From: Adineta vaga | Lineage: Eukaryota > Animalia > Rotifera | DNA length: 64,000 nt | Assembly: GCA_021613535.1 (NCBI GenBank) | Contig: CP075492.1 | Span: 992,001 to 1,056,000 of the forward strand | Direction of reading: 5' to 3' | In this document: in pieces, positions 7-11,748 of the stretch | How the letters are laid out: every line of letters starts with the position of its first letter | How positions within the stretch are numbered: the stretch's first letter is position 1 | The notes under the pieces: model-generated | The model's database searches: none | What the model was told of the DNA's origin: nothing | The model's input: the letters and a program-made list of their open reading frames with translations, nothing else | Made by a program: the position numbers and the translations under genes

Positions 7-3000
7 ATGAATTCAACAGGATCATCTTCATCGATTTCATTTGCTTTATATGATTTTAATAAAGATAAACGATTAGATGCAATTATTATCAATAACGATA
101 CGGGAAGTATTGATATTCTTAAAGGTTATTTTGAAGGTTTTTCATCTCGTAGAACATTTAATGTTCAATATCCACCAATCTTTGTAACTGTTAGTGATTT
201 TAATAATGATGCAATATTAGATATAATACTTGTTAGTAACACGAATAATATAATGATGGTTCGACTTGGACGTAGTGATGGATCATTTGGAACTCAAAGA
301 ACATATTCAACTGGTACTAATCCAACTTCCATAGCTGTTGGTGATTTTAATAATGATACGAAAATGGATGCAGTTGTTACTAACGTTAACAGTGGAAATG
401 TTTATGTATTTCGTGGAAATGGTAATGGGTCATTTATAAGACAACAGATAATTTCAACTGGTTCTGGTCCAATTTCTGTAGTTGTTGCTGATTTGAACAA
501 TGACAAACGATTAGATATCGTTGTTGCTAATTATGGTGACAATACTGTAAGTATTTTATTAGGATTTGGAAATGGTTCCTTTGCAAATCAAATGAAATAT
601 TCAACGGGTTCTAGACCACGATCTGTTGCTGCAAGTGATTTTAATAATGATCATTATCTTGATCTAGTTGTTGCCAATTATGATAATAGAACTATTAGTA
701 TTCTTCTTGGTTATGGTAATGGAAGTTTTGCAAATCATTTCACATATCCAATTGGTTATAAACCGTACTTTGTAGTAATTGGAGATTTCAATAAAGATAC
801 TCAAATTGATATTGCTGTTGCCAATTATGGTAGTAGCACTGTGAGTATTCTGTTAGGATATGGAAATGGAAGTTTCACACAGCAAGTCATCTATGGAACA
901 GGCACTCAGCCAACATCTATAAGTATTGGAGACATGAATAATGATACACAATTGGATCTTGTTGTGGCTTGTGTCAGTGTGTTGAATGTTTATATTTTAT
1001 TTGGATACGGAAATGGTTCGTTTCATGATGCAATATCGTATAATACAGGCGCATATTCATATTCTGTTGCTATTGGAGATTTGAATAATGATACACGACT
1101 GGATATAATTGTAACAAATGAAAATAATAATTATATAAGTGTATTATTTCAATATAACAGAGGTGCCCTTCTAAATGAATTGACTTATGCAGCTGGTGGA
1201 GGTTCGAAATTACGATCGGTAGTCGTTGGTAATATAAATAATGATACTCGATTAGATATTATTGTTGCTAATTATGGTACTAATGATGTTGGTATTCTTT
1301 TTGGACAAGATAATGTTACTTTTCTAGATCAAATAATGTTTAATATGGGTTCGAATTCTCAACCATCATCCATTACTACTGGTCATTTTAATGATGATAT
1401 CTACTTGGATATTGCTGTAGCTCTTTCTGGTCCTAATCAAGTTGGATTATTACTTGGAAATGGCCATGGATCATTTACTCATCAAGCAACTTATCAAATT
1501 CCTTCCATATTTCCTCCGTTCATTGTCTCTGCTAGTGATTTCAATAATGATGGACAATCAGAAATTATTGTCGGATACGATGACAGTGATACTATTGATA
1601 TGTATGTTATATATAATACTGGATCGTTTACACTTCATGAAACATATCCAGTTGGTTTACGTCCAAGATACCTCTGTTTGGACTATATTAATAATGACAC
1701 TTACATTGATATTGTTGTTGTTAATTATGATTCTGATGATATAAATATTCTCCTTGGATATGGTAATGGTAGTTTTGCACAACCATTGACCTATTCAACT
1801 AGTGCTCGGCCATATTCTGTTGCTGCTAGTGATTTTAATAACGATAATCAAGTAGATCTAGTTGTTACTTATGGTGGTACGAATTATGTGACTATATTGT
1901 TAGGATATGGGAATGGTAGTTTTGCAAATCCAATGACATATTCAATTGACTCTGGCTCATCATCTTCAACTGTGGGTGATTTCAACAATGATACACAACC
2001 GGATCTAGTTGTGGTCGCTGGAAATGGCAACATCATTTTGTTCCAAGGATATGAAAATGGTACTTTCTCAAATGGAATTCAAATTGCAACTACCAACGAT
2101 CCACGATACGTGATTGCAGCTGATTTTAATAACGACAGCTGTTTGGATTTTGCACTTGCTAATTACGGTCTTGATAATGTAGGCATCTTTATTGGTTATG
2201 GTAATGGTTCTTTTGCAAAACAAGTAACATATTCAGTTGATTCCAATCCATTTGTATTAGCGGTTGGAGATCTAAACAATGATAATCGATTAGATATTGT
2301 TGTAGGTACATTAGGTCATCGTACCATTACTGTCCTTCTTGGCTATGGTAATGGTTCTTTTGCAAATAAAACAATCTTTCCAGCTGGTATTCTGCCAGAA
2401 TCCGTAGATATTGGTGATTTTAATCTTGACGGTTTTCCAGATATAATTGTTGCCAATCTTGGTGAGAATTCTGTCAGTGTATTGTTAGGATATGGTAATG
2501 GAAGATTTGCATCTCAAATTAAATATATAACTGGTTCTGGTCCACAATCTGTCGCTATTTTTGATTTAAATCATGATACTCAACTTGATATTGTCGTTGC
2601 CAATGCAGGTGATTGCAATGTAGTTGTCATGTTTGGTTCTCCAAATTTAGTCTTCAAAAATCAAACAAAGCTTTCAACGGGTAAAAGTTCACAATCACGA
2701 TCATTTGTTATTAACGATTTTAATAATGATAATTATAAAGATATTATCGTCGCTAATTCAGGTACTGATAATATTGGTGTTTTTCTTGGATATGGAAATT
2801 TCTCTTTCACAAATCAAACAACATATTCAACTGGTAATAATTCTTCTCCATATTCTATTGCAACTGGTCATTTCAATAATGACACTTATCTAGATATTGT
2901 TAGTGCAAATTCAAATTCAGACAATATTGGTATTTTTCTTGGTTATGGAAATGGTTCATTTACAAATCAAAGAACATATTTCACGGGTTCATCTTCATAT

Positions 3001-3258
3001 CCTTATTCTTTAGCTATTGCTCATTTTAATAATGATACGATTCTTGATATCATTGTTGTTAATTATTATAATAATAAATTTGGAGTCTTTCTTGGACATG
3101 GTGATGGAACATTTGATAGTATCATTTTCTTTTCGATGCCATATGGATCGAATCCATTCTCTCTCATTGTTGCTGATTTTAGTCAAGATGGAAAAATGGA
3201 TTTTGTGGTTGCAAATGTTGGTACAGACAATTTAAATATTTATCTACAAACTTGTTAA
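7..3258 (+). CDS. FG-GAP/VCBS repeat beta-propeller protein (probably 5'-incomplete at window edge)
   Basis: About 20 repeats of GDFNNDxxLDIVVANxGxxxVSILLGYGNGSF; long uninterrupted ORF. Confidence 0.9.
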   Translation: MNSTGSSSSISFALYDFNKDKRLDAIIINNDTGSIDILKGYFEGFSSRRTFNVQYPPIFVTVSDFNNDAILDIILVSNTNNIMMVRLGRSDGSFGTQRTYSTGTNPTSIAVGDFNNDTKMDAVVTNVNSGNVYVFRGNGNGSFIRQQIISTGSGPISVVVADLNNDKRLDIVVANYGDNTVSILLGFGNGSFANQMKYSTGSRPRSVAASDFNNDHYLDLVVANYDNRTISILLGYGNGSFANHFTYPIGYKPYFVVIGDFNKDTQIDIAVANYGSSTVSILLGYGNGSFTQQVIYGTGTQPTSISIGDMNNDTQLDLVVACVSVLNVYILFGYGNGSFHDAISYNTGAYSYSVAIGDLNNDTRLDIIVTNENNNYISVLFQYNRGALLNELTYAAGGGSKLRSVVVGNINNDTRLDIIVANYGTNDVGILFGQDNVTFLDQIMFNMGSNSQPSSITTGHFNDDIYLDIAVALSGPNQVGLLLGNGHGSFTHQATYQIPSIFPPFIVSASDFNNDGQSEIIVGYDDSDTIDMYVIYNTGSFTLHETYPVGLRPRYLCLDYINNDTYIDIVVVNYDSDDINILLGYGNGSFAQPLTYSTSARPYSVAASDFNNDNQVDLVVTYGGTNYVTILLGYGNGSFANPMTYSIDSGSSSSTVGDFNNDTQPDLVVVAGNGNIILFQGYENGTFSNGIQIATTNDPRYVIAADFNNDSCLDFALANYGLDNVGIFIGYGNGSFAKQVTYSVDSNPFVLAVGDLNNDNRLDIVVGTLGHRTITVLLGYGNGSFANKTIFPAGILPESVDIGDFNLDGFPDIIVANLGENSVSVLLGYGNGRFASQIKYITGSGPQSVAIFDLNHDTQLDIVVANAGDCNVVVMFGSPNLVFKNQTKLSTGKSSQSRSFVINDFNNDNYKDIIVANSGTDNIGVFLGYGNFSFTNQTTYSTGNNSSPYSIATGHFNNDTYLDIVSANSNSDNIGIFLGYGNGSFTNQRTYFTGSSSYPYSLAIAHFNNDTILDIIVVNYYNNKFGVFLGHGDGTFDSIIFFSMPYGSNPFSLIVADFSQDGKMDFVVANVGTDNLNIYLQTC

Positions 3259-4158: not shown

Positions 4159-7100
4159 ATGAATTATATAGCCAACGTTGAATTCGTTGATTCGATGTAT
4201 CAACTATATATACAACTTAATCTCGATAGAGAAAAACAAATGATAAAACCATTCTTATCATCGAATTTCAATGATTCTTTATTTTATAATTCAAATCAAT
4301 CTACAAATATGATTAATTCATCAGTATCTCAATATGAAAATATCTCTACAAGTTAGTATTAAATAATAATAAATCAGTTGAATATTTTTCTTTTCTTAAA
4401 TAGATGAACAAATGAATATATCATTAATACAATTAAATCATTCTAAAGAAGAAGATTTTTTAGTTAAAATATATATTCCAAATTTACCAATGATTGATTT
4501 AAATATAAATCTAGAAGAAATAATAATTATACGATTAGATGATTTATATAAGATAAAAATATCTAAAATTGAATGTTTTACTGATATTGGTATTGGTATT
4601 ATATATGTAAATGAAAAAGAGAAATTTTATTTAGTTAATAAATTTCAAACAATTGTATTACAACAAGAAAATCAATTACAAATTCATTTTGTTGAACATT
4701 TAGAAATTATTTGTTATTTAATATTTGATAAATCAATTCAATTAACAACTAAAACAATTGCTCAACGATGGATGAATGTTTTTCAATCAGAACATTTACC
4801 TAAATGTGAAATTTTATCAATACAATTTTCAAATATTATTAAAATAACAATATGTTCTATTGAAGAACTTCAATTAGCATTAGAATATCGAATTATTTCT
4901 ATTGATGATGAAATTGGTCGAATATTTCTTCGAGTTGATTGTTGTTATTTAGAAGATATTCCTCGTTCAAATCCAAAAATAACATTAGAACAATTATTTT
5001 GTTATATTTTAACACAACTTCAAATGAATGATCGTTTACGAACTGATCGAAATTATTGTCAAGAAAAAGCTGATGAACTTTATAAACAATTTTCATCATT
5101 ATCAGATGAAATGAAGAAATTAAAATCATATTTTTATATTCAATATAATGAAGAAACATCAAATGCTGTTATTCTTGCATCAATAACAATATATAAATGG
5201 TTATTAATGAAATTTGTTAATATTAAAAATGAATTTATATTTAAAACAACAAATATTTCTTGTAAATTAATTATTAAATCTATACCAAATGATCTTTCAT
5301 CAACAACAATTCTTAATCATAAAATATTTCAAAATTCAATTAAACAAAATGATTACAAACGTATTAATGAAAATCTTATTATTGAAATAACTGATTCTCA
5401 TGTTTATGATAAATGTTTAAATATTCGTTTTATTGAAATAATTCATAATGAATATCAATTAAGATTACAAATTTTTCCATATACATCTATTGCAATTATT
5501 AATCCTGAAGATACTGATATTAATGAAGAGAATTGGTATAGTACTCGAATGTTTGATTATAAATCTGATATAACACAATTTGATCCACATCATCCATTAT
5601 TTCGTTATAAATGGAATTCAAAAATTTGGTTAGAACAATTTAAACAAATTACAATACAATTTGCGAAAACTAATGATACAAATGAACGACATAAATTAGA
5701 TATATCTCGTCGTATGCTTCGTGTTACAGTTATGTTAAAAACGATGGGAGTTATACAAGCTAAAAAATATGAACTTGAAGATACACCAACAAAAACAGAA
5801 ATTGAAATTCAATCACCAACACCACTTGTTACAATTGTTTATAATCATTAATCGAAATTAATTAAATCATCGAAAACAAATAGTGGATTATCATCATTCG
5901 AATCAACTAATGTTCGAGTAATAAATGAAGATTGTCTTATTTCATATGAAAAACAAGTAGCAAATGGTTATAAACCATTACTTCTCAATATGGCTAATGC
6001 TTTGACACCCGGTGGAGGTTATCGAAAAGGTGATGGTGCACAAGAAGAAAATCTTTTTCGTCGTTCAAATTATTATCTTAGTCTTGATCCAACACTTGCT
6101 TATCAACAAGATCAATTAGATAATTGTCAATGGTTTTACTGTTCAGAAACAACAGAAATGAAATCATTAGATATAAAACAACGATCATTATATCCAATAG
6201 ATGAATATGGTGGGATTTATACATCAGGTATAACTGTTTTACGAGGAATAGAAGCAAATGGTTACCCATTTTCATCAAAACCACTCTACAATGTTTGTTC
6301 ATTAGCAATTGCTGCCTTTCGAAATCCACCTGTTCATGATAATAATCGTCTCTCGTTAAAATATGCTATTGATACTCGAAAGAAAATTGAAAATTTCTTT
6401 GCAATTGCACATCAACATGGTCATAATTGTCTAATACTTTCCGCTCTTGGATGTGGCGCATTTAAAAATCCGTAAGTATTTTTCATTACAAATATTTACT
6501 CTATACTAATTCTTTCATATTTTTTTTGTTAGTCCTGAACATATTGCTTTAATTTTCAAATCAGTTATTATTCAATATGCTGGATTTTTTCAAAACATTA
6601 TTTTCTCAATTATTGATGATCATAATACTGGTAATCAAATGAATCCAAATGGAAATTTTCTTCCATTTCAAAAAGTATTAGATGGTTTTTCTGTTCGTCC
6701 AGTAATGAATCTAAGTATTGGAATGGCTATAGGACCTTATTATATAATAGAATCACAAAATAAAGATAAATCTGTACGTTTTGATCATATTAGTATACTA
6801 CATTTACCATTATGTGAATATGGTACAAAATGTCGAAATTTAAATGATTCTAAACATATCGTCAATCATATAGTCATCCACCATTATGTCCAATGGAATC
6901 GGAATGTATCGACATGAATAATGATGTTCATTTTCAATCATTCAGTCATCGTCTATTATGTCCTCAAGGTGGTCTCTGTAAATCTTTTGATGATCAACAA
7001 CATATAATTAATTATATTCATCCAAATTTTTGTGTTGAAGGTGGATTATGTACTAATATGAAAACATTCCATTTAGCAAAATTTCGACATGTATCATTAT

Positions 7101-8781
7101 GTCGAGATGGATTAGATTGTAAATTTAATTTACAAATGATAAAAGAACATCAATTGAAATATCGTCATTGTCAAAATTCATGTCGATTTGGTGGTAATTG
7201 TATTCATTTTCATGATCAAGATCATATTAAACATGAATCACATCCATTCAAAACACCTTGTCCTCAAACTCCATTTTCTTGTGAATTGTTTGTTGAATAT
7301 TTACAATCAAATGATTTACATCAAGATTATAATATGAATCGAAAAGAATTCAAAGATCTTGAAAATCATTGTCTTCATTATTCCCATGTATGTCCGTGGG
7401 GTCGTCAATGTACTGATACAACACCAAAACATTTATCAACAACAATACATATTGCACGAGAAATGTGTCCTGATGATAAAAAGTGTAAGTTTTTAACGAA
7501 TGAAGATCATCTGGAATCATTTACACATACTGATATACGAGATATTCGACTTGAATGTCGTTATTCAGCTGCTGATTGTCGAGATCTAAAGAAATCGTCT
7601 CATATGATTAAATATCGTCACAATTATCGACAAGATTTCCTTGGTGTTGCACAATGTTCTGGTTTGAATCGAACAACAGATTTCATATTCAATCAAGAAT
7701 ATATGATTAAAAATCTACAAGAATATTTCGAAAAAAAACATCATATCGAATGGTCAAATATTTCCATTTCAAATAATTTACTCCATTGGGTTCGAACTCT
7801 TCTACCAGTTCATCGATGTTCGCCAACTATTTTCGAATCTATTCTTGTTCATGGTCATATCATGAGTCGAGCACATATGGATCAATTACAGGAAGAAAAA
7901 TTTGTTGCACATAGTGTTAATCAACATAATAATGTACGTAAAATTGTTTCGAAACATGTAATTGCTGTACAAGATAATGTTCGTGATTTCATTGATGCAC
8001 TTGTCGAAATGGAATTTCATAAAAAAAACTATCAATTAAAAATGAATTACAAATACAATATCAGATTGATTCAAAAGAACAAGCAATACAAGTCGCACTT
8101 CAATCTAAAGAAATTAATGAAATTCGTAAGTGTGTAATTCAAGTAGTTAACGCATCATTTATACTTCAGTCAAATAAAACAGGTATTGGATTTGAGCGTG
8201 ATGTTGAACTAGGTACACATCATCATGTATTTGCTATTCTTGGTCCTCATACAGGTCATTATTATGGTGATATTGTTGTTGTGTTTAAACGTGAGATCAT
8301 GTTACATCCAGATTCAAACTTTACTATGCAAGCGGCTACAACATGTACACCATCAGAACCTGATAAACCACCTAAAGCTTATAAATTTCGTCCATGGCTT
8401 CAAGATCCTGGTAAAAACGAAGAACGATTGAAAATTTATCATCAAACAAAACTTCATTGTTCTGTACCAGGTTATGAAACTGTCACTGCATTGGAGCTTA
8501 TGGCTATTACTGGAGGACAAAAAAATCCAATGAAAGCTGATCTAAAAAATATAATTCAACGATGGAAAACCGTTGATTCTCATCAAGTTATTGAAACTCA
8601 TTTACCACAATTGATTCCTCTTAGTTATGTTGATCATATATACATGCCAAAAAATGTATTTGATTCATTGTCTCTTGTTGCTCAACGAAATGCAGAAGAA
8701 ATATTTGGAAAGAAATTAACTGTAACAGAACATATTGTTGATCTTACTGTTGAATTAATGGCTTTTGCTGAACCCGATTCA
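4159..8781 (+). pseudogene. Multidomain protein: microbial-type PARG (TIGR02452/DUF2263-like) + PBZ-like zinc fingers + putative DarT-like ART domain; disrupted
   Basis: LNMANALTPGGGYRKGDGAQEENLFRRS and LILSALGCGAFKNP PARG motifs; repeated C-x5-C-x6/7-H-x5-H fingers; in-frame TAA at 5849-5851; intron about 6472-6532; frameshifts near 6860 and 8030; cut off at about 8782 by a transposon end. Confidence 0.8.
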
Positions 8782-8804
8782 CAAGGGGGAAAGTACGGGT
8801 CCAA

Positions 8805-8880
8805 CACCTCCGCACCTTTTCGGCACCTCAGCACCTTTTCGGCACCTCTGCACCTTTTCGGCACCTCAGCACCTCAACAT
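8805..8880 (+). repeat. About 19-bp subterminal tandem repeat (CGGCACCTCAGCACCTTTT)
   Basis: 3-4 GC-rich copies immediately inside the CAAGG terminus. Confidence 0.85.
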
Positions 8881-9120
8881 CTTTTCAATATCTAAGCACT
8901 ATTCCAATACCTTTGCAGTATCTTTTAGCATCAAATATCTTAACTTTATAAGAAAATAATTCATATATAATAGTTTTTATTTTCAATCATTCGAACGAAA
9001 CATACTCTCAGATTTACATAACATGAGAGTTTTATGCTGCAAAAACAAATATTCTAGTTTTTCACAATAACTAATATAAAACCTAAAGACAGATATATAT
9101 CAAATGAAAATTTAACATTT

Positions 9121-11748
9121 CTATCCCGATGTTTTAACACGCTCTAAACGATCACTAGATAATCGACTTTTTGAGTCTGTTAATAACCAACATGCTGTTT
9201 GTTTGTGCAAGTATTTTACTGATGAACCTACTCGAATGCGAAAATATTTATGTATATATTGTGGATTTACTTTGTCATATATTCGACAACCTTGGAAATC
9301 TTGTCGTTCTATATCAGAAAGATTTGATATGATATTTCCTTCATCTTCTTCATCTTCATCATCTGTACCGTTCTTCGATAATGTTTCATCATCAAGCAAT
9401 TCTGAATCATTTTCTTCGTCATCTAATTCATCTTCATCACTATCTTGATCAAAATCAATATCTTCTGTATAATCAATTACTTTCGACCCTGATTTACTTA
9501 TATTAATTACTATGAATTGACTTAATGCAGGTAATGTATAAATATTTTTATTAATCAATAATGTGTTCATATTGGCCATTGTCACATATTTTTTTGCAGC
9601 TTCAAATGCATTTTCAATTATTTTTTCAATATCATACTCTGTCAAATTTAATTCTTTTATATAATTCATTGAATAATTATGAATTTCTTTATCAGTCTTA
9701 TGATGTTGTGGAAATTTAAAATTGTAATTATCCCCTTGTCCGCTACGAGACTTGATCGAATCAATAACTGATATTTTGTCACATCTTTTAATAAAAGACT
9801 TAACAGTAAAATTGCTGATTGATGAATAAGGACCTGATAAAGCACGTGCGATACGAAAAATATTCTCACATCCTTGTGAATTAAACAAAAATGTATTGAG
9901 TACATTAACAGGTAATCTATTATTTATTACTAAAAGAACCATATAAAGTAATGTATGAGCGTTTATTTCAATGCACCAGAATGTCGGTTTAGTAATGAAA
10001 CTATTTGCTTTTATCTTTTGAATTGAATCAGTAGTTTCATCATTAATAATATTCTTTATCTTCGAATTTTGTAGCCATGCCCACCACATTCTACAAGTAA
10101 AAACTGCGGTCCAAATATGATACAATCGTTGTTCGATTGTTGTTGATTTATCAATTAGTCCTTTTATAATTGAATTTAATAATGAAAGATATATGAATGT
10201 TCCAGTATAATTTTTATTGTTATTTAATAGGTTTAATACCATATCAGAAGAAATACGTCGACAGGAGACAAAGTTTTGCTTGTCTTTAGGACATACATCA
10301 CATTTTATTAAATTATGATCAAGTTTATTTTTTAGAGCAATCAAATTCATCAAATGTTGAATATCAATTCGATAATCTCCCATCTTCATCGATGCCACTT
10401 CTGAAAGGAGTCGATTTCGAAACTTGGTAGCTATATGGATTGAGTCTTGCATAAAAAGCAAAAGCTGTTGTCCTTTCATAAAAAACCAAGACCAACGATC
10501 AGGTATTTTTAAATGAAAATTATCTTTATGTTTAAATAAATTTAAATTAGGTAATTCGGCAAAAAATCGACTACATAATCTCATTGCACGAAGATAACGT
10601 GGATCTGCATCTGTACTAAAGCCTATAACACGTACATTTTGTGCTAGACATTGATTATAAATATATAGCCACCTCTTTAATATATCTGTAGCTGTCACCT
10701 TATTATCTGAGCCATATGCTGATAAAATGAATGGTGGAGTTGATGGTACCACTCACTGTATTACATGAATATTAATCAATTTTGATTTATTATAATTATC
10801 AAACCATATTTTTAATTCTTCATAATTATCTGTTCGAAAAAAATTTGGTTTAGGAACTCCATCAGTTAATGGTGATGATAAGCCGATGAAAGAGTTGATT
10901 TGTGCATCATAATCAATACGACAAATAGAATTAGTACAATCCTCTGAAGCAAATACATAATTACAATGATTTGATTGTGAATATTCTTTTAACAATTTAA
11001 ATCGAAATTGACCTTCAGTGATTTTAACTTCTGGATTTCTCAATAATGATTCTATATTGGATATATGTGGCAACGCCCCCGGTAAGTTTAATCTAAGAAA
11101 TTCATAGCAATTTCGTCCACCAAGAATAAGCAACAATAAAGCAAACTGCTGAACATGACTATCATATCTAAATTGATTCTTTGATTTCTTGAAATTTTCA
11201 AAAATGTTTTTTATCCAAGGAATAAGTATAGGAATATTATCTTCATTCGATGAACTAAATGATTGCTTCCATAATTTCGGTAAATTTTTTACGATGTAAT
11301 CTTCAATATGTTCATATGTTGGTTGAAGAGTATTAGTAGAGGGATTTTTCTTTGATCCGACTAACAACCATAAACGATCAAGTAAATTTCGAAAACCTAA
11401 TCGAAGATAAAACCTTCCATCAGCTGAAACAAATCCAAGTGCTTTTTTTAAATTATTTAGTTCGATAACATCAAAATCGAGAATGTGTATTAATTCGTCA
11501 ATTGTAATCGATGATAAAGAAGACATGTCTCGAATACCTTGTATCCGAAACAATTCGCATAAATCTTTATTTAAAGCTGCTTCTAAGAATTTGTAGAATG
11601 TATCATGACTTAATTTCATCATATCATCTGTTAATTCATGAATCTCAAATATATCCATTGCTGATAATGTGTGTTGTTTTTCGTTAAAAAAGAACCTATA
11701 TATAGTAAAGCTAAACATAAGAATACTATTTAAGTCAATTTGATTCAT
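9121..11748 (-). pseudogene. P-element/THAP9-like DDE transposase lacking an obvious THAP domain, with one in-frame TGA
   Basis: Motifs FASEDCT, FSTDADPRY, QDSIH (DxxH), DKQN, FNSQGCENIFR; ORFs 10753..11748 and 9121..10752 are in frame and separated only by TGA at 10753-10755. Confidence 0.75.

Follow-up and report, generated by a model that had tools for sequence, protein, structure and literature searches.

A pseudogenised allele of a PARG and PBZ-finger gene family with a predicted ADP-ribosyltransferase-fold domain in the rotifer Adineta vaga

The stretch of DNA analysed here spans 64,000 nucleotides from Adineta vaga, a rotifer of the bdelloid group (contig CP075492.1, positions 992,001 to 1,056,000; hereafter the window). 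Between positions 4412 and 8781 of its forward strand, the window carries one gene of a family that has expanded in bdelloids, in the form of a pseudogenised allele. Intact members of this family combine RRM-like domains, a microbial-type PARG and PBZ-type zinc fingers with a domain that we call domain X, which is predicted to adopt the ADP-ribosyltransferase (ART) fold. Taken as a whole, the locus is probably best explained as a pseudogenised allele of an RRM-PARG-PBZ-ART family whose proteins are predicted writers, readers and erasers of ADP-ribose. A first-pass annotation of the window had described an animal gene fusing a PARG, fingers and a DarT-like ART, broken in the present copy. The source of the gene is indeed an animal, A. 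vaga, a species noted for surviving desiccation and radiation, and the earlier interpretation is supported overall with the qualifiers given below.

Results

The fusion of all parts in one gene is best documented by the paralogs of the window copy. The A. vaga assembly (100.8 Mb in six contigs) contains 14 matches to domain X and 18 matches to the PARG piece, and it has at least 12 paralogs. Six of the paralog loci are single open frames of 1790-2048 residues carrying all parts in each, so that the fusion must be considered real. An example of an intact paralog is the ORF of 1906 residues at L025:4058-9775, with I4U23_011751 as the annotation of its best database match. PARG and the C-terminal region are not split into separate genes among intact homologs, and PARG, fingers and the C-terminal domain are also joined in distant protists. 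Intact family members are about 1800-2050 residues long and begin with four RRM-like domains. These are followed by a PARG of the microbial type, an array of nine PBZ-type fingers, domain X, a domain of ~250 residues and a last group of three PBZ-type fingers. Even the closest paralog shares only ~50% identity with the window copy, and the window locus thus represents a separate lineage of the family. The family is large in bdelloids, with members in Adineta, Rotaria and Didymodactylos. Precomputed Pfam annotation on most bdelloid members is restricted to PF10021 and PF10283, and some members carry additional RING, RanBP2, ARF or PF01129 modules. The conserved ~250-residue domain following domain X in intact paralogs (residues 1400-1665; locus L025, 8255-9052) is absent from the window, and its sole lead is a weak language-model similarity (0.87) to FAMeT-type PF12248 clusters. 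A disordered stretch rich in Ser and Pro separates this domain from the last three fingers of the intact paralogs.

The structural prediction for domain X points to the ART fold. An AlphaFold2 (AF2) model built from an alignment of 11 paralogs reached a predicted local distance difference test score (pLDDT) of 86.5 and a predicted template modelling score (pTM) of 0.84. We compared the model by VIA with 48,161 representative chains of the PDB, and the top eight matches were all ARTs. The best matches were CopC (7xn4; Z 11.5 with 223 residues aligned) and SopF (7dn9; Z 11.5), along with OspC3 (7wr5 and 7wr3; Z 11.1 and 10.2, respectively) and DarT (7omv; Z 11.0, root-mean-square deviation (rmsd) 3.2, 174 residues aligned of 210). 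The remaining ones were DarT1 (8baq; Z 10.0), DarT of Mycobacterium tuberculosis (7yk3; Z 10.0) and the fused DarTG of Thermosipho africanus (7omu; Z 9.8). Tpt1 followed at Z 7.4, and the rows below it matched only the helical insert at Z 6.8 or less. In the Foldseek search SopF came out on top (probability 0.95-0.96), with DarT, OspC3, CteC and PARP as weak further matches. Among the shape neighbours of domain X in the ESM Atlas were DarT, DUF3626, MuF-fused and RHS-toxin clusters, as well as clusters of bacterial and phage origin. On the strength of these models, domain X is a predicted ART-fold family.

Conservation within domain X is concentrated on a small set of residues. Across 30 sequences sharing 21-48% identity, conservation is complete or reaches at least 90% at H59, S77, F202, G206, G214, H227, P228 and D229, and likewise at H313, E317, H319 and P321. 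The conserved motifs are all kept in the window copy, including the C-terminal motifs VHRCSP, VFAILGPH and VIETHLP named in the first-pass annotation (Table 1). In the predicted structure, H59 lies on a strand at 56-61 and F202 on a strand at 201-206 followed by YYG (Y212/Y213), and E317-x-H319 opens a strand at 317-320. According to the model, this Glu-x-His starts the late strand on which ARTs carry the catalytic Glu, and the placement of the conserved residues would suit the core of an ART. Catalysis by CopC depends on an H-F-E triad (PMC9239266).

The resemblance to DarT holds for the predicted fold and fails for the sequence family. Four DarT structures are among the top matches of the domain X model, in keeping with the DarT-like reading proposed before. 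Yet the DarT model PF14487 found no match to the window piece at E up to 1 and none to the 30 family members at E up to 10. As a positive control, PF14487 retrieved three other A. vaga open reading frames (ORFs) with E values from 2.6e-18 to 3.4e-15. A profile-to-profile comparison by hhalign between domain X and an alignment of rotifer DarT gave a probability of 0.6%. Membership of domain X in the DarT family was rejected on these two grounds, and "DarT-like" should therefore be understood as a statement about the fold only. The OspC/SopF type fits the model of domain X as well as DarT does. Pfam models of the OspC and SopF-DUF3626 type likewise gave no match in the 30 members at E up to 10. 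The hidden Markov model (HMM) of PF12294 (DUF3626) had no match in the genome either, in a search that lacked a positive control and is thus uninformative. As judged from these comparisons, domain X would found its own sequence family within the ART superfamily, with DarT and the OspC/CopC/SopF type as the structurally nearest relatives.

The three ORFs recovered by the positive control are, as far as their sequences tell, bona fide DarT homologs in an animal. They are located at C1:10552398-10552964 (L031:1501-2067), C3:3141545-3142072 (L032:1501-2028) and C1:10131884-10132483 (L033:1501-2100). The ORFs span 561-800 residues or more and score 58.9-67.5 bits against PF14487. They show the classical motifs YHxTH..N..SIL, RFYFRP and QxEFLI, as well as long N-terminal regions lacking Pfam annotation.

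Relatives of domain X extend far beyond rotifers. A search of its profile against 1.84 billion cluster representatives retrieved 408 proteins at E <=0.001, including 312 at <=1e-10. Distant members with 21-30% identity were found in Pelomyxa schiedti, Naegleria gruberi, N. fowleri, Gefionella okellyi, Kipferlia bialata and a marine protist transcriptome. The Pelomyxa protein starts with a GBP-like GTPase and continues with PARG, nine fingers, domain X, another four fingers and VWA. In Gefionella and in four metagenomic proteins, PARG is followed by 5-15 fingers and domain X, and N. gruberi encodes a PBZ finger above the Pfam cut-off beside domain X. In other members, a ROCO module (LRR-Roc-COR) or a protein kinase (Kipferlia) is joined to fingers and domain X. 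A finger array immediately upstream of domain X is nearly universal and a PARG fusion is frequent. That domain X stays linked to PBZ-type fingers and a hydrolase of ADP-ribose provides independent support for its role in ADP-ribose metabolism. A word-based protein search with a broad domain X alignment returned only rotifer proteins and unnamed metagenomic proteins. Combinations such as those of domain X with GBP-like GTPase and VWA, LRR-Roc-COR or kinase domains typically occur in multidomain proteins of signalling or of immune type.

Each piece of the broken window copy was searched on its own. The window piece 5852-6472 matches PF10021 with an E value of 7.7e-19 and 69 bits (cut-off 23.5), and the paralog PARG domains score 71.7-77.7 bits. 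The microbial-type PARG signature named in the first-pass annotation, GGGYRKGDGAQEE at 6011-6049, lies within this match and has the form of GGG, seven residues and QEE. Paralog PARG domains also match the structures of the enzymes from Deinococcus radiodurans (5zdf, E 9e-13) and Thermomonospora curvata (3sig, E 8e-12), in alignments covering both the GGG-X7-QEE signature and the C-terminal GCGxF.N motif. By its sequence the piece is a microbial-type PARG (PF10021 / TIGR02452) and a predicted glycohydrolase. The region upstream of PARG (4412-5848) had no Pfam match in the window copy. An AF2 model of the corresponding 333 residues of a paralog resolved into four tandem RRM-like (beta-alpha-beta-beta-alpha-beta) domains at pLDDT 85.5. 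The 50 top PDB matches of this model were all RRMs (Z 8.8-10.0, mostly at ~2 A rmsd), including the RRM of PARP10 (2dhx).

The zinc fingers are of the PBZ type by spacing and by a profile pooled from many fingers. The two fingers quoted in the first-pass annotation are present in the window (7181-7243 and 7391-7450), and the count is nine instead of about ten. This set of nine is common to every intact paralog, each of which adds three at the C-terminus. The array of the window copy gave no Pfam match, and single paralog fingers scored 16.7 and 14.8 bits against PF10283, below the threshold of 22.7. PF10283 is precomputed on many family members, though, and the Naegleria member exceeds the cut-off (24.5 bits). 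A profile of 46 paralog fingers covered each of the two APLF PBZ fingers completely (2kqb, E 1.3e-6), and it gave a weaker match to CHFR. Matches of the same profile to Notch EGF domains covered the C..GG.C half only. The four zinc ligands are invariant among the 46 fingers, with a Gly before the second Cys in 24 and a Phe or Tyr before the last His in 37. In APLF, the residues contacting poly(ADP-ribose) (PAR) are Y381, Y386 and R387, equivalent to a Tyr after the first Cys and Tyr-Arg after the second (PMC6264785). The position two residues after the first Cys is Tyr or Phe in 12 of the 46 fingers and His in 9; Lys or Arg occurs in 13 fingers one residue after the second Cys and in 13 fingers two residues after it. 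The claim of PBZ-like fingers thus stands for spacing and for the pooled profile, but the PAR contacts of APLF occur in a minority of fingers. Because the contact Tyr and Arg are largely missing, the array is a predicted rather than an observed reader and may bind PAR.

The gene copy in the window is broken on its forward strand in the four ways noted before, by a TAA codon, two frame slips and a transposon. Where the window copy has the TAA, the paralogs have a codon for Arg. The frame slips by one base near 6858-6860 within finger 1, and a second slip lies somewhere in 8023-8077. Gene homology stops where a P-element-like transposon cuts the gene at 8781/8782. Given the nonsense codon, the two frame slips and the loss of everything 3' of 8781, the assembled allele cannot encode the full protein.

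Contigs from sequencing runs indicate that the decay is partly heterozygous. The stretch is present in DNA-run contigs from four studies, and we compared three runs (2013, 2015 and 2021) with it. These are Logan contigs, in which variants at this locus cannot be phased. All three DNA runs contain the junction 8781|8782. All three also yield a contig of 8.9-9.4 kb, which departs from the window at 8781 and continues in a paralog-like manner and in frame (...SRKEYHEYIL). This contig is the allele without the insertion. Neither the window nor the six-contig assembly contains its continuation past 8781, and hence the 3' third of the gene is missing in the assembled haplotype, which makes the structural difference a hemizygous one. 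Position 5849 is a C in a contig of the 2013 DNA run, which gives CAA instead of TAA. In one DNA run, 16 extra nucleotides after 8032 keep the frame. The alleles thus differ in three of the four lesions, namely in the TAA, in one of the slips and in the transposon. No indel near 6860 was found in three independent DNA runs, and the finger 1 slip looks common to the alleles. RNA runs of A. vaga contain almost none of the sampled words of the stretch. The one RNA run compared had two fragments of ~30 nucleotides only, both with flanks mismatching this locus. The window copy is a decaying, partly heterozygous pseudogene.

The layout of the locus follows the paralogs closely up to the insertion (Table 1). 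The forward strand at 4400-8892 contains five long stop-free stretches with a change of frame between them. We searched the whole 64-kb window by tblastn using two intact paralog proteins as queries. The matches followed one another along the window, with frame 2 at 4469-6472, frame 0 at 6534-6857, frame 2 again at 6869-8077 and frame 1 at 8059-8751. Jointly they span paralog residues 51-1398, and paralog residues beyond ~1400 have no counterpart anywhere in the window. Paralog homology starts at 4469 and the first ATG in that frame is at 4412. An earlier start at 4159 had been proposed. The ORF at 4159-4353 was not counted in the gene because it shows neither paralog homology nor a family match. 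The intron proposed before is canonical; its removal from the window copy yields ...GAFKNPPEHIALIF..., in agreement with the paralogs. Splicing restores in the window the GAFKNPPEHIAL motif, which is uninterrupted in the paralogs.

Table 1. Features of the pseudogenised family member and of the adjoining transposon in the window.
Feature	Position	Strand	Basis
N-terminal region: four tandem RRM-like domains (~4442-5488), helical lead-in to PARG from ~5591	4412..5848	+	open frame; aligned with paralog N-termini
Nonsense codon TAA, in frame	5849..5851	+	same-frame paralog homology runs across the stop
Microbial-type PARG catalytic domain, first exon part, with GGG-X7-QEE at 6011-6049	5852..6471	+	PF10021
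Canonical intron, 61 nucleotides, GTAAGT...TTAG	6472..6532	+	sequence; splicing joins the frames
End of PARG domain, PEHIALIF...FSIIDDHNTGN	6533..6635	+	paralog residues 672-705, 50% identity; D. radiodurans PARG C-terminal strand
Nine PBZ-type fingers, C-x5-C-x6/7-H-x5-H; finger 1 at 6813-6877	6813..7621	+	pattern search; paralogs
Domain X (350 residues), ART-fold model; final residues lost to the insertion	7721..8781	+	alignments, predicted structure
Domain X motifs: conserved His (VHRCSP); VFAILGPH; HPD; Glu-x-His (VIETHLP)	7808-7825; 8227-8250; 8305-8322; 8587-8607	+	alignments
Left part of P-element/THAP9-like DNA transposon; transposase remnant ORF at 9121-10752	8782..10752	-	sharp junction 8781|8782

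The transposase ORF resembles P-transposase/THAP9-like clusters with a feature score of 0.96-0.98 and a template modelling (TM) score of 0.70-0.73. The remnant retains a GTP-binding insertion and RNase H C-terminal parts and was missed by the Pfam HMMs. The left-end DNA of the transposon is single-copy in the assembly, and a terminal inverted repeat and a right end were looked for and not found. There are ~20 or more decayed relatives of the transposon in the genome; most relatives are decayed and clustered near the ends of contig C3. Directly upstream of the gene, an intact ORF of 1083 residues (7-3258 of the window, forward strand) consists almost wholly of FG-GAP/VCBS-type repeats (PF13517, 21 stretches, E 6.6e-141).

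Discussion

The family described here represents a new architecture and a new variant within the ART superfamily. Parts of it have been noted before. An A. vaga PARG carrying several PBZ repeats was mentioned by Perina et al. 2014, citing Slade et al. 2011 (PMC4245714). This is the same gene family; the passage in question speaks of PARG and PBZ only and makes no mention of the ART-fold domain, the RRM-like N-terminus or protist relatives. No description of these three aspects was found in the literature, in a search of partial coverage that is not proof of novelty. The PARG and PBZ half is hence already known, and the ART-like domain is apparently unpublished. ADP-ribosylation genes are enriched among genes induced by desiccation and radiation in A. 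vaga, in a study making no link to this family (PMC10809525).

Several known systems share features with the rotifer proteins. The bacterial toxin-antitoxin system DarT-DarG pairs an ART-fold writer with a hydrolase of the macrodomain superfamily, and both kinds of activity are predicted to be fused here. DarT and domain X share a His motif near the N-terminus, with SIL..G..S after it, as well as a late Glu of the catalytic type. In contrast, domain X falls outside the DarT sequence family and contains an extra helical insert of ~120 residues. Furthermore, the hydrolase is a microbial-type PARG instead of a DarG-type macrodomain, and the protein is a eukaryotic multidomain protein with RRM-like and PBZ modules. 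The ADP-riboxanases OspC3 and CopC together with SopF provide the best structural matches to domain X (Z 11.1-11.5 with 215-223 residues aligned), as well as the top Foldseek match. The H-F-E triad of CopC resembles the pattern of His, Phe/Tyr and Glu conserved in domain X. However, there is no sequence-family relation. OspC3, CopC and SopF are effectors that bacteria secrete, that calmodulin or ARF activates and that act on host proteins, whereas the rotifer protein is endogenous, eukaryotic and fused to PARG and zinc fingers.

Among eukaryotic proteins, PARP14 has been described as a writer, reader and eraser of mono-ADP-ribosylation (PMC10470015). PARP14 and PARP10 resemble the rotifer family in joining RRMs, macrodomain eraser or reader modules and a C-terminal ART in one polypeptide. 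With its RRM-like N-terminus, including the match to the PARP10 RRM, the overall plan of the family therefore parallels PARP14. The ART is not a PARP catalytic domain though, the eraser is a PARG-type macrodomain, and PBZ fingers take the place of macro or WWE domains as readers; the two architectures were assembled independently, by convergence. The fingers follow the APLF/CHFR type of PBZ (PF10283), C-x5-C-x6-H-x5-H, with Gly before the second Cys and an aromatic residue two before the last His. APLF and CHFR differ in having one or two fingers compared to nine plus three here.

We suggest that intact proteins of the family may act as self-limiting writers, readers and erasers of ADP-ribose, analogous to DarT-DarG and PARP14. 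Domain X would use NAD+ to ADP-ribosylate a target, which might be a nucleic acid as for DarT, fitting the RRM-like modules, or a protein, the kind of target that OspC and SopF have. Through its fingers the enzyme would be tethered to ADP-ribose, PAR or nucleic acid, and the fused PARG would trim or reverse the mark. Such a protein probably would have a role in the response to DNA damage or stress, or in defence. ADP-ribosyl transfer by domain X is predicted here from the modelled fold and the conserved residues.

A number of observations weigh against this proposal. Domain X had no Pfam match, neither for the window piece nor for 30 diverse relatives at E up to 10, and its profile produced chance matches only against PDB sequences (E above 0.3). 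Of five AF2 models, a single one reached good confidence (86.5 versus <=63.6), and the alignment comprised 11 sequences. The assignment of catalytic His, aromatic and Glu residues is a tentative one, drawn from motif position and predicted secondary structure, and the conserved Glu is absent in 3 of the 30 family members. The low hhalign value against rotifer DarT and the lack, in most fingers, of the PAR-contacting Tyr and Arg known from APLF add to these points. As for the reading of the locus as a pseudogene, a shorter protein of RRM and PARG parts may still be made from the other allele.

Three alternative readings deserve consideration. The locus could be intact and working, with the stop and the slips being assembly errors. 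Long-read assemblies of AT-rich DNA often have homopolymer indels, and some breaks are missing in some read sets (the C at 5849 and the 16 extra nucleotides after 8032). The window version of each break is reproduced, however, in independent contigs of the 2013, 2015 and 2021 DNA runs. No run has an indel at ~6860 and all have the transposon junction, both window and assembly lack the last third of the gene on its 3' side, and the one RNA run compared provides no real coverage. We therefore regard assembly errors as an extremely unlikely explanation. Domain X could also be a divergent true DarT that ADP-ribosylates thymidine in single-stranded DNA, with PARG replacing DarG. The four DarT structures do align over 167-186 of ~210 residues at Z 9.8-11.0, the N-terminal H..SIL..G..S and C-terminal Glu motifs resemble those of DarT, and RRM-like domains could hold single strands. 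Against this reading, PF14487 is silent on domain X yet finds three real DarTs in the same genome, and the profile comparison was equally negative. The rotifer DarT motifs RFYFRP and QxEFLI are absent from domain X, and the protein-modifying CopC, SopF and OspC3 match as well or better. A divergent DarT is hence very improbable.

The alternative with most weight is that domain X is an ART-fold pseudo-enzyme, which binds NAD+, ADP-ribose or nucleic acid and serves as a sensor or scaffold. The protein would then combine an eraser and a reader in the absence of a writer. TASOR and PARP13 are ART-fold pseudo-enzymes used as sensor or scaffold, and inactive ART-like domains are generally common in eukaryotes. 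Domain X shares no sequence similarity with any active ART family, and its Glu is replaced in some members. But His59, Glu317, His319 and several Gly and Pro residues are 90-100% conserved across lineages sharing ~21-30% identity, and the recurrent fusion to a hydrolase removing ADP-ribose is what would be expected of a writer and eraser pair. We consider a pseudo-enzyme unlikely and prefer the reading of domain X as a predicted writer.

The family may have implications well beyond the decayed copy in the window. To our knowledge, few eukaryotic writers of ADP-ribose are known outside of PARPs and ecto-ARTs. We see about even chances that domain X is an undescribed, active ART family across Rotifera, Amoebozoa, Heterolobosea, Metamonada and malawimonads. 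It would then be part of an ancient, self-contained module to write, read and erase ADP-ribose, possibly acting on nucleic acids, which bdelloids amplified for stress tolerance or defence. The window copy serves mainly as a pointer to the family and is also a record of a heterozygous truncation linked to a transposon. The family provides a eukaryotic counterpart to bacterial DarTG for comparison, and its intact genes are a concrete set for testing a new ADP-ribosylation pathway. Domain X constitutes an unannotated, predicted ART-fold family that is tied by fusion to a PAR eraser and PAR-type readers across very distant eukaryotes.

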